From Basidiobolus meristosporus CBS 931.73 (lineage: Eukaryota; Fungi; Basidiobolomycota), in assembly GCA_002104905.1 (NCBI GenBank), contig MCFE01000324.1, positions 1-64,000 on the forward strand: a DNA stretch of 64,000 bases. The letters are read 5' to 3'. Every line of letters starts with the position of its first letter. Position 1 is the stretch's first letter. A program made the position numbers and the translations under genes. Below are positions 2,431-51,987 of the stretch, in pieces. The notes under the pieces are model-generated. The model was not told the DNA's origin, did no database searches, and saw only the letters and a program-made list of their open reading frames with translations.

Positions 2431-3457
2431 TTGCTCATACTACTCTGTGATTCTACCTCATTTGAAGCATGGCTTAGACACAGACCAAGTGCAGAACATG
2501 TTGGAATATTTGGGTGTAGAGCATATGCAATGAAACTGCCTGGGAATCAGTCAAAATTTGAGCCAAAAAGTGTAAAATTCATATTTTTGGGCTACTGCAA
2601 TGAGAGTGAAGCATGCAGACTCAACAATACAAAGCAAAGATGCTGGTCAGGTCCAGGGATGTGTGTTTTGATGAAAGTTCAAAATTATCACAGATAATGA
2701 TATCAAATGATAAGAAAATTTTGATCTCAAGTCCACCAACCGTCAGGAATGAATCCAAGCAAAGCAATGAGAACTTTTTACTCCAAAGAACTCTACAATC
2801 ATGCTTCATCCTGAATCTGGGCCCAAGAATATCCCAGAAGTGATCATTTCTGTAACAAATGCCAGAGGATCCAACTGGACAAGATATAGCCCAAAGTACT
2901 AAATCAATGAGGGTGCAAACTTAGCCTATGCCTATTCAGTCAATATTGATGAACCCAGACTTTAAAAGAGGCCTTAAATAGCCCTCAGACAAAGTTTTGG
3001 AGATCTGCAATGACTGAGGAATATCAGGCTCTGATGGAAAATCAAACTTGGGACTTGGTCAAATTAGCAATCAACCAAAAATCTATTGAATGCAGATGGG
3101 CCTTAAAGACAAATATAAGGCTGATGGTACAATTGAAAGATACAAAGCAACACTTGTGACAAAAGATATTCTCAAACAAAAGGACTTGACTATACTGAGA
3201 CCTTTGCACTAGTAGCCAAGTTTAATGTTGTAAATACTAAGTTGTCACCAAAATATTCATGCTAAATTAGTCGCATAGATTTTATTCTTTGATTAGCATT
3301 CTGTCCTGATCAAATCTCTTGTTGGGATTTGCTTGGATTATTTTCATCAAATTATCAGGTACCCAGATTATGATCTTTCTCAAAGTTGTCCAAAAGCCCC
3401 CAAACTTTGCACACATATTCTTGGGACCTTCCTTAACAAACTCTGCATGTTTGTTTT

Positions 3458-3806
3458 TGTTGTAAAAATTTGTAATTCCACCTATATATTCACCTAACTT
3501 AGCCACTTGAATCTTTACCCTCAAGTTCTAGAGAATACTGACCAAATTCCTTGTTGGGATTTACTTAGAATATTTTCACCAAAATACCAGGTACCCAGAA
3601 CATGAGATATTACAAAGTTGTCAAAACTGCCCCAAACTTTGCACACATGCTCTTGGGACCTTCCTTAGCCTATTCTATGAGTTTTTAACGCCAAGACCAG
3701 GTAAAAGTATAAATACTACCTATACATTTAATAAATCATTAAGTGAAAGCCACATAATCAACTTGTTCTTCCAATCACTTCCAATATCTCCAGAACTCTT
3801 ACAACA
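3458..3806 (+). repeat. 5' LTR (LTR-A)
   Basis: TGTTGTAA...TTACAACA inverted termini; TATAAATA box inside. Confidence 0.95.
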
Positions 3807-3818
3807 GGTTATGAGCCC
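3807..3818 (+). other. Primer-binding site complementary to the anticodon arm of initiator tRNA-Met
   Basis: GGTTATGAGCCC immediately after the LTR; contains the gag ATG (3811). Confidence 0.85.
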
Positions 3819-4883
3819 CAAGCTGTCACTCTCTGCAATATCTACTACTGCTCTTACTGGAATTGTTCCCTCTGCTGAAAAGTTGGATGGATCTAACTGC
3901 AAAGTGTGGAAGGTGAAGATGAAGATGCTACAACAAGAAAGAGGCCTTTGGGATATTGTCATGGGAGAAGAATACCCTCCTAAAAATGTGGGAGAGGAAG
4001 CCTTGAGGTACCAGAAGAAAGAACAAAGTGCCTTTAACTGCATTTGCCTTAATGTTAAGGACAAATTGCTAATTCAATGCTCAAGAGCAAAAACGGCAAA
4101 GAATGCCTGGAAGGCATTAGAAGACACCTACCAGTCATTTCAGCTGCCAAGAAAACGTATCTGAGACAAAAATTCTTTACTACAAAGATGCTGCCAGGAG
4201 AAGAAATGAAAAATCTAATTAACAGAATACCCTGCTGTTAGATGAGATGGAATCTGTGGGCATACCAACTACTGATGATGATGTGATAGATACCATCCTG
4301 AATAGCCTGACAGACAAGTTTCAGGGCCTTGTATCAGCCCCAGAGTCCAACTCTGAAGATTTGACCTTAAATTATGTATGTGGAAGGCTCCTGGATGATG
4401 AATTAAGGAAATCAAGTGCCAATCAGAAGGAAGAAGAAAATGCTTTAATAAGCAGTGATAACAAACAAAGGAGGTACCCAAGACCCTACAAAGGCAACAG
4501 CAACCTGTTTTGCAACTACTGCAAAAGGAAAGGACACATATCAGACCGGTGCTTCAAAAAGAAAGACAGTCAGCAGAAAAAGCCTGAATATGGAAATGCT
4601 GCAACAACTGAAGATAGACTATTCATATCTGCACTAAACACAACCCCGAACAAGGATTCTCAGATGTGGTATATTGACTCTGGAGCATCTCAAGACTTTA
4701 CACACCAAAAAGAACTCTTTACCCAATATCAAGAAATTCCAATTAAGAATGTTTTCATGGGTGACAATCAAACACTTGATGCAGTGGGAGAAGGAACTAT
4801 TCAAGTAAACCTAAGAAGCAGTGAAGGAAGTCATACACTGACCTTTAAAGAAGTACTCTATGTACCAGAAATAGCCAAGAACC

Positions 4884-47852: not shown

Positions 47853-48622
47853 TTACGCTCAGCATTATCGCCCAAACAAGCAAATCCATAGGTACATTGA
47901 AAATACGACACCAAAAAGGTTCGCCAATGTGCAAACCCGACCATGTGCATTGCTGGTCAATCTAACCTCCTTGAACTTGAATCCAATGAATCCTCGAAAT
48001 CCCCCCGATAATTAACGTAAAGTGGGACCAAATAAGAGAAAACTAGCGGGAAGTAAGACAAAGCATCGAGAAGTGGGACAGGTGAAGTAGGACAGACTAT
48101 GAATAGATCATGATGGTGAGAAGTAGGACACTGAGACACCAAGGGTATTAACTTCAAACCCAAGCTTAACAAATTCACCGCAATCAACGATCATTGGATC
48201 ACCAAGCCAGGCAACCCCATGGGCAATACCAATGACATGATCATTAGTGTTATGTGGTCATCCCACCTATCATCAACCACCCTCCTTGCCTGGACCCCAA
48301 CCAACATCGGGAATAGCTACGACTTATTCCTGGTACCTCGCTTCTGCGTTGGAAACCATCGAAATTTTTTCGTTCGTAAATATCCTTCCAAAAATATCCA
48401 CCATATATGGAGCCCTTGCCTTATTGATGGTGGTGATTGGTAAAAAAACGAACCCGGGTTTTCTCTCATAAAAGGCGCGAATGCGCAGCCTTGGAAAAAC
48501 TCATACTGCTTAGTACTTGTCCTTCAAGCCTTACAGTTGTCAGGATTACGATCAGCGCTCGCTCGTAGAGTACATCTCTCTAGGTTTCCCGTAATAGTCT
48601 GCTCAGTGAATTGCTTTTCTAA

Positions 48623-48838
48623 AGCGATCTTAATATCTTCGGCTTTTCAACCCTCCCGTTAGTTGAGAAGTTATTTACCTGGTTTCCCTCGTGGTCTGAA
48701 CTTTTGTTCCTGCACTTTTCCCGTACCTGGAGAAGTGCTTTTATCATCGCGACCATTCTCGCAAATTTGTCAGTGACAGCAGTTAAGGATTTCCCTGAGC
48801 CACCTCCTTGGTTGCCTTGCTCTCTCGGCCTTGCCTGA
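48623..48838 (+). promoter_or_regulatory. Candidate non-AUG upstream conserved coding region (uCC) with PPW motif in the ODC leader
   Basis: Open frame without ATG ending ...KDFPEPPPWLPCSLGLA*; stop 102 nt before the ODC ATG; candidate starts ATC 48635 and ACC-ATT 48755. Confidence 0.72.
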
Positions 48839-48940
48839 CATCGTTTAACTCGATTCCACCAGTAGCTCCTTTTCTGCTGATCACTGTTTGTGAAAAGTAC
48901 CTGACGTTTGAGCTCTCTTTGATTAACGAAACCCGATAAA

Positions 48941-50308
48941 ATGAAGAATCTTTTGGAAGCCACTCCTTTTGATGAGCTAGCCACCAGCTCTGTTAAATCC
49001 CTCATGAAGACGAAGCTTTCTGCTGAAGAAAGTTACGAACCTTTGGAATCTGCTTCTATCGACGCCCTCCTCTCCCAGCGCGTGATGGTGGAGGATGGGC
49101 CGGAAGAGGCGTTTTTCGTTGCTGACCTTGGTGAAGTGTATCGCCAATTCGTTCAGTGGCACAATTTACTTCCCTCCGTTGAACCTTTCTATGCGGTCAA
49201 GTGCAACCCTGACCCCATGGTTTTGCGGTTCCTCGCCAGACTCGGCGTCAATTTCGATTGCGCTAGTTTGAAGGAGATGGAGATGGTCTTGAACTTGGGT
49301 GTGGATCCCTCCAGGATCATTTTCGCCAACCCATGCAAGCAGGCCTCCCATCTTCGCTATGCTCGTGACAACGGTGTCCTGATGATGACCTTCGACAATG
49401 CTGATGAGCTGCATAAGATCAAGCGCATCCATCCTGACGCCAAGTTGGTTCTTCGAGTTTTGACCGATGATTCCAAGGCATTGTGCAAATTGGGATTGAA
49501 GTTCGGTGCTTCCTTGGATGTCACCGGCTCCCTGCTCCAAACTGCCAAGGATTTGGACTTGAATGTCATTGGCGTCAGCTTCCATGTTGGTAGTGGTTGC
49601 TATGACGCCGGTGCCTTTGCCGACGCTGTCGGTCGCGCCCGATTTGTCTTCGACCAAGGTGAGGCGCTGGGATTCAGCTTTGACTTCCTCGATATTGGTG
49701 GCGGCTTCCCCAGCCCAATGATTCAAGATGGCCCCACCTTCCCGGAGATCGCCTCCATCTTGCGTACCGCTATGGCTCAACTCTTCCCCCCAGGCTGCGG
49801 AGTACGTATCGTTGCTGAGCCTGGCCGTTACTTTGTCAGCTCTGCCTTTGTTCTTGCTTGCAACGTCATGGCGCGCCGTATGGTGACCCGCGACTCCAAT
49901 GCTCAAACCGTTAACGCCGATGGGGAGATTGTTAACGACTCGGCTCCCACCATGGATGATCACCCCGCCTACATGTATTACATCAATGACGGTGTGTATG
50001 GGTCATTCAATTGCATTATGTTTGATCATCAGGAGGTCACTCCCTTGATTCTGAAGCGCCGTGGTGTTTACACCTACGGAAGCGAAGTGAATGACATCAC
50101 TTACGACTACTCCATGTGGGGACCCACGTGCGATTCCATCGATTGCATTGTCAAAAGCAGCACTCTCCCCGAGCTGAACATCGGTGACTGGGTGTACTTC
50201 GAGAACATGGGCGCGTACACTATGTGCGCTGCCTCCCAGTTCAATGGTTTCCAGAAGAGTAGCGTTATGTACACCACCACCGAACCATGTGTTTTGGATC
50301 TCTTTTAA
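48941..50308 (+). CDS. SPE1: Ornithine decarboxylase
   Basis: PFYAVKCN (PLP lysine), HVGSG, DIGGGFP, EPGRYF, WGPTCDSID; intronless 455 aa. Confidence 0.98.
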   Translation: MKNLLEATPFDELATSSVKSLMKTKLSAEESYEPLESASIDALLSQRVMVEDGPEEAFFVADLGEVYRQFVQWHNLLPSVEPFYAVKCNPDPMVLRFLARLGVNFDCASLKEMEMVLNLGVDPSRIIFANPCKQASHLRYARDNGVLMMTFDNADELHKIKRIHPDAKLVLRVLTDDSKALCKLGLKFGASLDVTGSLLQTAKDLDLNVIGVSFHVGSGCYDAGAFADAVGRARFVFDQGEALGFSFDFLDIGGGFPSPMIQDGPTFPEIASILRTAMAQLFPPGCGVRIVAEPGRYFVSSAFVLACNVMARRMVTRDSNAQTVNADGEIVNDSAPTMDDHPAYMYYINDGVYGSFNCIMFDHQEVTPLILKRRGVYTYGSEVNDITYDYSMWGPTCDSIDCIVKSSTLPELNIGDWVYFENMGAYTMCAASQFNGFQKSSVMYTTTEPCVLDLF

Positions 50309-50563: not shown

Positions 50564-51987
50564 ATGACCACTTCCCCCAACGACCAAGCGAACCCAGAAG
50601 CTGTGTTGGTTCAAAAGAAGGCCAAGAAAACCAAAAGAAAGCCCAGAGCTAAGAAAAGCAATAAACGTGTAGAGGGCCCTAAGACCAAGGTTGTCATTCG
50701 TCGATTGCCACCAAATCTTCCGGAGGAATTGTTTTTCAAATCCATCCAGCCATATATAACCGATGAGAACATCGATTGGAAGCTTTACGTGCCAGGGAAA
50801 ATCAGCACCAAGTAATTAAGCCTTTCCTTTCATCAGATCTTGCAACCCGCCGCCTCCACGAACTCCCTTGTTCATAGGGCCACAGCTTGGCAAGCAATTG
50901 ACCCTGTTCTGTTGGCTAATCCGCTTCACTTCTCTTTGTAGTAAGAACAAGGAGAATCATTTCTCGAGGGGGTATTTGCATTTCAAAACCATCGATGATG
51001 TGATTTTATTCCACCGTGGTTACGATGGGCATCTTTTCGTCGATTCTAAGGGTATTACGACATGCTATGATGGATCACGGTACTTTCGAAAGCTAACACG
51101 GAACTCATATCGTGCTAGGTAACGAGAGTAGAGCCGTAGTAGAATTTGCTCCGTTCCAGAAAATCCCGAAAGAGAACCAGAAACCTGACCCAAGAGAGGG
51201 CACGCTCGAGGAGGGTATGTGTACTCTTTTCTGTTCGTTGAGGGTTGCCTGTTGACCTGATTCCTGTGCTTAGACCCCGACTATCTGGCATTTCTGGAAA
51301 CCCTGAAGGAGGAGAAGGAGAATAAAGAGAGCAACGGTATCAGCGATGGCACCACGCAGTTAGAAAAGTTGGAGGCTAGGCTCTCTAAAGAATCAGGTAA
51401 AGTTCGCTATTCTTGGGCTGCAGTAAAAGAGCTGTATTTTGACAAAGGCTGGCGCTTGCTTAGTTGTTCCACTCAGCACAAACTCGACTCCAAAATCAAC
51501 CCCTCTGTTGGATTATCTCCGTGCTCAAAAGGCTGCCTCTAAATCAAAGAAGAAAAACCAGTCTGGCAAGCAAGCACCTGTTATGATTCTTACCAATCGC
51601 AAGAAGGGAGGAGCCGGAGGAAACGGGGGCAATGCCAATGGCACCTCTACCGGTGCCAAGACCGACTCCAAACCGAAAAAGCCCAGTAAAAAAGAGAGAG
51701 AGAGACGTCGCAAAGAACGTGCGAAGGAGAAGGGGGAAGCACCCGAAGCTCTGGCTAAACCTGCCAAGGACGTGCTTCCTCCTAAGCCTCCAAAATCCTC
51801 GAGGCCTAGAAAGGAGCGTGATCCAAATCCCGAGGGAGGGAACAAAGAGAAGCCGCCCAAGAAAAAAGGCAACAAGTCCAACAAACCCCCTAAAGAGGCA
51901 GGCAAGGGGCAGAAACCCAAAGACCTCGACAGTCCAGCACCCAAAATCATGCAAAAGCCAAACTCACAGCCCAAACTGGAGTCTTGA
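50564..51987 (+). CDS. UPF3: Nonsense-mediated decay factor Upf3 (multi-exon)
   Basis: KVVIRRLPPNL, SRGYLHF, F..KG..RAVVEFAPFQKIP, DPDYLAFLE, TPLLDYLR. Confidence 0.92.

Follow-up and report, generated by a model that had tools for sequence, protein, structure and literature searches.

Is the ornithine decarboxylase (ODC) gene of Basidiobolus meristosporus CBS 931.73 controlled by a peptide that is encoded in its own mRNA leader? We addressed this question in a 64-kb stretch of contig MCFE01000324.1 (GCA_002104905.1), here called the window, whose coordinates are those of the contig. A sequence-only reading of the window had proposed that an ODC gene is preceded by a leader free of ATG codons, and that this leader hides a Pro-Pro-Trp (PPW) frame ending 102 nt before the ODC ATG. 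All three elements of this anatomy are in place. The gene at 48941–50308 matches PF02784 (2e-84) and PF00278 (1e-26) in Pfam, and its protein product is 55–62% identical to the ODCs of Mortierella, Glomeromycotina, Mucorales, Kickxellales, and chytrids. On the plus strand, no ATG lies between one at 48481 and the ODC start codon at 48941, leaving a 460-nt gap that ranks as the second longest ATG-free stretch in the window, where ATGs occur at a density of 17.4 per kb. The base composition of the leader predicts ~6 ATGs in 460 nt, and the probability of finding none is ~0.002. Within the gap, a frame is open from 48623 to a TGA stop codon at 48836–48838, 102 nt upstream of the ODC ATG, and its end reads ...PPPWLPCSLGLA (also given as ...KDFPEPPPWLPCSLGLA) before the stop. 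Public annotation of this locus comprises ODC and a downstream UPF3-like gene, and the leader is empty; an AUG-less regulatory uORF escapes ORF finders. Pfam searches gave no match for the peptide of the conserved part of the PPW frame, nor for an antisense 128-aa ORF at 48619–49005. The gene directly downstream of ODC, starting at 50564, encodes a homolog of the nonsense-mediated-decay factor Smg4/UPF3, and its position there is probably a coincidence.

The leader is colinear with sequence from a close relative. In one public run (X1), a 1751-nt contig of a relative with ~97% identity aligns to 48524–50283 without a joint. The stretch is present in two public runs, both as assembled contigs, and the RNA nature of these runs is a guess. 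About 50 nt separate a TATA-like ATAAAAG motif (48468–48474) from the 5' end of the X1 contig downstream of it, which is consistent with a transcription start near 48500–48525. Compared with the window, the X1 relative lacks 17 nt within the unconserved part of the leader (48610–48626), a deletion that takes out the TAA opening the 48623 frame, and a single further nucleotide at 48575. The leader around 48610 tolerates indels, and constraint there is relaxed, as these differences show. Among the differences listed for X1, one falls inside the conserved part of the PPW frame (48823 T>C) and is synonymous; there are 14 further differences beyond these. The features of the locus, and those of related leaders described below, are collected in Table 1.

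Table 1. Features of the B. meristosporus ODC leader in the window, and equivalent upstream frames in other fungi and in metagenome contigs.
Feature	Location	Strand	Basis or particulars
TATA-like ATAAAAG, likely core promoter of ODC transcript (presumed function)	48468-48474	+	Common to paralog leader within poorly aligned region
ODC mRNA 5' leader, minimum extent, AUG-free, unspliced	48524-48940	+	Colinear relative contig (run X1, RNA nature guessed)
RNA hairpin, 10-bp stem, 7-nt loop, ends 7 nt before AUC 48746	48712-48738	+	Predicted fold and comparison
uCC with TGA stop; 27 (AUU start) or 30 (AUC start) sense codons	48746-48838	+	Paralog identity, homologous fungal uCCs
Upstream candidate for uCC start, AUC (-3 A, +4 G)	48746-48748	+	Positional equivalent of zygomycete ACG start
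Downstream candidate for uCC start, AUU (-3 A, +4 C)	48755-48757	+	Conserved in paralog
Pro-Pro-Trp codons CCT CCT TGG, third Pro before at 48800	48803-48811	+	Putative stall site
ODC main ORF, 455 aa, intronless	48941-50308	+	Pfam match and annotated gene in GCA_002104905.1
Martensiomyces uCC	L003		ACG plus AUU; Trp is codon 22
Coemansia uCC	L007		AUC only after hairpin
Rhizopus uCC	L004		22 codons from ACG
Umbelopsis uCC	L009		22 codons from ACG
Bifiguratus uCC	L092		ACG start; without strong hairpin
Mortierella uCC	L005		Tail PPWLP..GLV, then stop
Rhizophagus uCC	L006 (1793-1980)		uCC split by 110-nt intron
Geosiphon uCC	L091 (1647-1830)		uCC split by 78-nt intron
Metagenome contigs	L011, L012, L018		Uninterrupted ODC ORF

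Upstream conserved coding regions (uCCs) of ODC mRNAs have been reported as a class in animals, Pezizomycotina, Basidiomycota, and 'Zygomycota', and the animal and fungal groups are regarded as independent inventions (PMC2811004). The 'Zygomycota' group is described as 22 codons long with a putative ACG start (Ivanov et al, 2009, PMC2811004, summarising Ivanov, Loughran & Atkins, 2008). In the mechanism known for AZIN1, a uORF started at AUU carries a PPW motif at which ribosomes stall, with the involvement of eIF5A and of ribosome queuing (PMC9082881, PMC8705083, citing Ivanov et al, 2018). By analogy, we think it likely that the Basidiobolus frame is an ODC-homolog uCC of the zygomycete form, and that a polyamine- and eIF5A-dependent stall at PPW gives feedback on ODC. 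Scanning 43S complexes would mostly skip the weak AUC at 48746 and/or AUU at 48755, so that ODC is translated from the AUG at 48941. Those ribosomes that do initiate in the leader would make a peptide of 27–30 codons and arrive at Pro-Pro-Trp. High polyamines would interfere with eIF5A and, as in AZIN1, formation of the Pro-Pro-Trp bonds would then fail and the ribosome would stall. The stalled ribosome and one behind it would block the leader, and the next 43S complex would be held near the weak start 48–60 nt upstream. Such a queue would raise initiation at the uCC and lower ODC synthesis, a negative feedback on polyamine production. Since eight codons follow the tryptophan, termination would be no part of this stall.

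A translated uCC might instead act as a constitutive damper that is independent of polyamines, imposing a leaky-scanning or reinitiation barrier, with PPW kept for some other reason, for example as a general sensor of eIF5A activity. A polyamine response is known only for AZIN1, and a common mechanism need not be assumed if the four uCC groups are independent in origin, as the 2009 review argues (PMC2811004). [quoted passage not shown]

The B. meristosporus genome itself offers a comparison for the PPW frame. We identified a second ODC gene on contig MCFE01000576.1 (locus L001), 82% identical to the window ODC in amino acids and 73.8% in nucleotides. Its leader is ATG-free over 495 nt and mostly unalignable to the window leader, with the exception of one island; in L001 the hairpin and uCC occupy 2754–2880 and the ODC ORF 3001–4368, and the uCC ends with ...PPPWLPYSLGLA followed by the stop. 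In window coordinates, the first part of the island is a 27-nt block at 48712–48738 that is 93% identical between the paralogs, with both differences in the middle of the block. The second part spans 48746–48835 and is 86% identical, against 65–67% in the immediate flanks; upstream of 48712, identity is 65% or less. Both copies have kept a regulatory module while the remaining leader diverged beyond alignment. The substitutions within the uCC follow a coding-type pattern, with 2, 3, and 8 differences at first, second, and third codon positions (8 of 13 at third positions), and 5 of the 30 residues differ between the two peptides. At the nucleotide level the uCC is more conserved than the ODC coding sequence (86% versus 74%). 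Third positions in ODC are near saturation (241 of 456 changed), compared to 8 of 30 in the uCC, so some nucleotide-level constraint must act on the uCC as well.

Two further observations were made. The 12 nt directly after the uCC stop (48839–48850, CATCGTTTAACT) hold one difference between the paralogs, after which identity collapses; they may form a termination or reinitiation context. Among ODC proteins ranked by bit score, the next after the Basidiobolus paralog are two from the mayfly Ephemera danica (P0003 and P0004; 718–734 aa, 622–635 bits, 43–45% identity). This ranking is odd for an animal ODC homolog of such length, and these proteins could represent a fusion, a tandem arrangement, or contamination.

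We next compared the DNA upstream of ODC in ten further genomes and in 80 ODC-encoding metagenome contigs. Besides the second Basidiobolus paralog, seven further early-diverging fungal lineages keep the uCC (Table 1). These leaders follow a common layout: an ATG-free stretch of ~500–800 nt (495–800 in the relatives), an in-frame near-cognate codon with A at -3, 16–20 codons leading to Pro-Pro-Trp, and 2–13 further codons before the stop. Start and second proline are 48–60 nt apart in all lineages, about two ribosome lengths. In an alignment of eight fungal uCC peptides, PPW are the sole invariant residues, and the proline codons of the motif vary synonymously among CCT, CCC, and CCA over all lineages examined. 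In the two Glomeromycotina, Rhizophagus and Geosiphon, an intron separates the ...GHQ codons from those of RSPPW, and splicing restores the frame to encode a common peptide, ...FRGHQRSPPW. It is difficult to see how the frame would survive across this intron if it were not read, and we infer that the uCC is translated. The metagenome contigs L011, L012, and L018 are very likely derived from cDNA, since their ODC ORF is uninterrupted while the genomic Mortierella ODC has introns.

The same comparison bears on whether the conserved island could be an untranslated cis-element, be it an RNA structure, a protein-binding site, or a DNA promoter element, within which the PPW frame is incidental. Such an element would account for the nucleotide identity of the paralog uCCs exceeding that of the ODC coding sequence and for their slower third positions, and the adjacent hairpin described below is evidence of RNA-level constraint in this leader. 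Across lineages, however, uCC nucleotides are unalignable, yet frame, length, PPW, and stop are kept; the proline codons change synonymously; the frame is restored over introns of different length in Glomeromycotina; and a near-cognate start with A at -3 stays 48–60 nt from the second proline. A promoter element in particular is at odds with the presence of the uCC inside contigs with an uninterrupted ODC ORF, which places it in the mRNA. We therefore judge an untranslated element to be quite unlikely.

The sequence-only reading had proposed that this is an unannotated non-AUG uCC of the ODC/AZIN PPW class and had named ODC leaders of related fungi as the place to look for its conservation. 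The paralog and the seven lineages bear out the proposal, with PPW invariant in eight uCCs, synonymous change in the proline codons, a frame that spans an intron, and a near-cognate start with A at -3 throughout. It had also called the frame a longer-tailed variant of the class, and had overlooked the conserved hairpin, described below, that directly precedes the start. The tail exists, as eight residues (LPCSLGLA) after the tryptophan, but it is not peculiar to Basidiobolus: it matches the LPxxxGLV form of Mortierella, where the uCC likewise ends PPWLP..GLV before the stop, and is thus a lineage-level variant.

Beyond the zygomycetes, we found an AUG-started PPW uORF of 13 codons in the chytrid Spizellomyces (L010:1844-1885), which reads MFLEPPWAGAEGA to its stop and lies 118 nt before the ODC ATG. 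A PPW uORF thus exists outside zygomycetes, there with a normal start codon. In Dimargaris verticillata (L008:800-2000), no PPW frame was found within 1.2 kb upstream of ODC, where the leader is ATG-free for 599 nt; here the uCC may have been lost or replaced, or may lie further upstream. As a separate matter, the longest ODC ORFs of Martensiomyces and Coemansia begin 57 and 81 nt before the annotated starts (L003:1944 and L007:1920, respectively), giving proteins of 455 and 464 aa in place of the annotated 436 and 424, and the deposited models may begin at the wrong ATG.

The 27-nt block upstream of the uCC is predicted to fold into an RNA hairpin with an MFE of -14.3 kcal/mol (z = -5.1). None of 200 shuffled sequences was equally stable, and neither was any of 278 50-nt windows of the leader. 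In 12 of 13 lineages, a hairpin ends 7–13 nt before the uCC start. Both Basidiobolus copies, Martensiomyces, Coemansia, Rhizophagus, and Geosiphon have a near-identical stem in which GCACUUUUCC pairs with GGARAGGUGY. In an alignment of these six sequences, all 60 of 60 stem cells are paired, 5 of the 10 pairs vary (four by G-U wobble and one by a two-sided change from A-U to G-C), and the loop varies freely; a control in which the pairing partner was slid along the sequence gave only 48–62% pairing. A column-shuffle control of covariation was not significant (77 of 500) with these six sequences, which are too few, and likewise with a four-sequence set.

Other lineages have unrelated stems at the same place: CGGACUG/CAGUCCG in Mucorales and Umbelopsis, GCAGRCC/GGUUUGC in Mortierella, and a 13-bp stem in L018. 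They stop 9–12 nt short of the ACG, and in most cases nothing else in the leader folds as stably: 4 of 379, 4 of 377, 13 of 627, 1 of 634, and 0 of 319 background windows are at least as stable. The L011 hairpin is a weak case (100 of 462 background windows are as stable), Bifiguratus has no convincing hairpin before the start (-5.6 kcal/mol), and animal-type metagenome leaders have none directly upstream of their AUU. The replacement of stems at a fixed position is a stronger argument for conservation of the hairpin than covariation counts. A search of Rfam 15 with 48450–48960 on both strands returned no match at E <= 1. Our bacterial-type promoter scan is irrelevant to this locus, yet its terminator pattern also marks the hairpin.

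We considered and rejected the idea that the hairpin region is conserved as a peptide (FSRxWRSA, common to Martensiomyces). Its codons are identical at six-fold sites and variation is confined to the loop. The frame of the 5' arm in Mucorales differs between Rhizopus and Umbelopsis, the 3' arm in Mortierella occurs in three frames, and there are in-frame stops inside the L018 hairpin.

These comparisons also narrow down where the uCC starts. Conservation is limited to ~48743 onward, and the 48623–48711 portion of the open frame is unconserved. The sequence-only reading had named two near-cognate starts, AAT-ATC at 48635 and ACC-ATT at 48755. Both are in frame, and the paralog and Kickxellales also have ACC-ATT; ATC 48635 is rejected, because the paralog carries an in-frame TGA between this position and the conserved part. 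It is very improbable that the uORF is the whole 72-codon frame that is open from 48623, in which ATC 48635 does have an A at -3, given that the paralog TGA (12 codons upstream of the hairpin block) shows neither the long frame nor this start to be conserved, that paralog identity is poor upstream of 48712, that the hairpin region is non-coding elsewhere (frame shifts between species, in-frame stops in L018), and that the 17-nt deletion of the X1 relative lies at 48610, just upstream. TTG 48704 was also rejected as a start: it is present in both paralogs, but its context is poor, only 5 nt separate it from the hairpin, Kickxellales have no counterpart, and L018 has stops at this place.

Two candidates are left. 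At the upstream one, 'AUC AUC GCG' in Basidiobolus matches 'AUC ACG GCN' of Rhizopus, Umbelopsis, Mortierella, Rhizophagus, Geosiphon, and Bifiguratus, and a start at AUC 48746 makes the tryptophan codon 22, the same as in Martensiomyces, Rhizophagus, and Geosiphon. The downstream AUU 48755 is aligned with AUU in Martensiomyces and with AUC in Coemansia, which has no in-frame near-cognate codon between the hairpin and this AUC. Sequence alone does not discriminate between AUC 48746 and AUU 48755, and both may be in use.

We then asked how the Basidiobolus uCC relates to the known groups. It resembles the Zygomycota uCC in its AUG-free ODC leader, its non-AUG start of the ACG/AUU type in good context, its very short length, and its adjacent prolines near the C-terminus. 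With that subgroup it has in common the start context, the 48–60 nt spacing, and the PPWL core, and with the 22-codon form of Rhizopus and Umbelopsis in particular also an alanine second codon, a ...F-P-P-W-L core, and the position of the upstream hairpin. It differs from the Rhizopus and Umbelopsis uCC in having 27–30 codons, PPPW, a tail of 8 residues instead of 2, and an AUC/AUU instead of an ACG start. To our knowledge, Basidiobolus, a member of Zoopagomycota, was absent from the genomes available in 2008.

Our metagenome set also contained 11 contigs, probably transcripts, with an animal-type ODC uCC (L022, L027, L028, L031, L033, L036, L037, L038, L043, L044, and L048). These begin with an AUU with A at -3 and C at +4 that lies 41–44 codons before PPW, have a common QGGF / SPEG core, and end with EPPWDPS, EPPWEPS, EPPWDPC, or EPPWDPE directly before the stop; in L044 the end is duplicated (PPWD...YWDPE). 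The Basidiobolus uCC is like those of AZIN1 and invertebrate ODC in its non-AUG start with A at -3, its invariant PPW, its stop a few codons on, and its position upstream of an ODC-family ORF. The AZIN1 and Basidiobolus uCCs presumably also have a common logic, a polyamine-dependent stall combined with queue-enhanced initiation at a weak start. In contrast to the animal type, with its PPW(D/E)PS endings before the stop and no hairpin directly upstream, the Basidiobolus start lies 16–20 codons before PPW, the tail is another one, and a hairpin precedes the start.

The role of this hairpin in our model is speculative. Kozak reportedly found in 1990 that a hairpin downstream of a weak start enhances its use, and at ~14 nt downstream it is said to pause the 40S subunit over the start codon. 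The Basidiobolus hairpin is likewise moderately stable, and its spacing from a suboptimal start is short and fixed. It is located upstream, however, ending 7–13 nt before the start, so its mechanism must differ from Kozak's and might involve exit-side contact or refolding behind the 40S subunit. With the P site of a 40S subunit on the start codon, the 3' edge of the hairpin would lie about where the mRNA exits the subunit. Our preferred guess, offered as speculation, is that the hairpin would there stabilise or retain the complex on the near-cognate codon; binding of a protein or of polyamines is an equally open role. More broadly, we tentatively propose, with somewhat more doubt than belief, that the hairpin is an ancient and integral part of the zygomycete ODC sensor, raising near-cognate initiation from the mRNA-exit side of the 40S subunit or by refolding behind the scanning complex, possibly in a polyamine-sensitive manner. 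The 2009 review (PMC2811004) and our text searches yielded no description of such a hairpin, and Ivanov's papers of 2008 in PNAS and of 2018 in Mol Cell may contain one. This conserved and tightly placed hairpin is possibly new biology, and the sole such element of the locus.

With the Basidiobolus uCC, a class described in 2008–2009 gains a genuine member that is absent from annotation, and the class now extends to Basidiobolus as well as to Kickxellales, Glomeromycotina, and Mortierellomycotina. The presence of the module in Zoopagomycota, Glomeromycotina, Mortierellomycotina, and Mucoromycotina, together with the chytrid PPW uORF, suggests an old origin and a wide distribution of PPW-based ODC control among early-diverging fungi. 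This spread bears on the question of whether the fungal and animal uCCs truly arose independently. Should our reading of the hairpin prove true, the ribosome-queuing model would gain an RNA-structure input. As an addition to that model of weak-start selection, the upstream hairpin is concrete and can be tested, with Mucor, Rhizopus, and Mortierella as tractable hosts.
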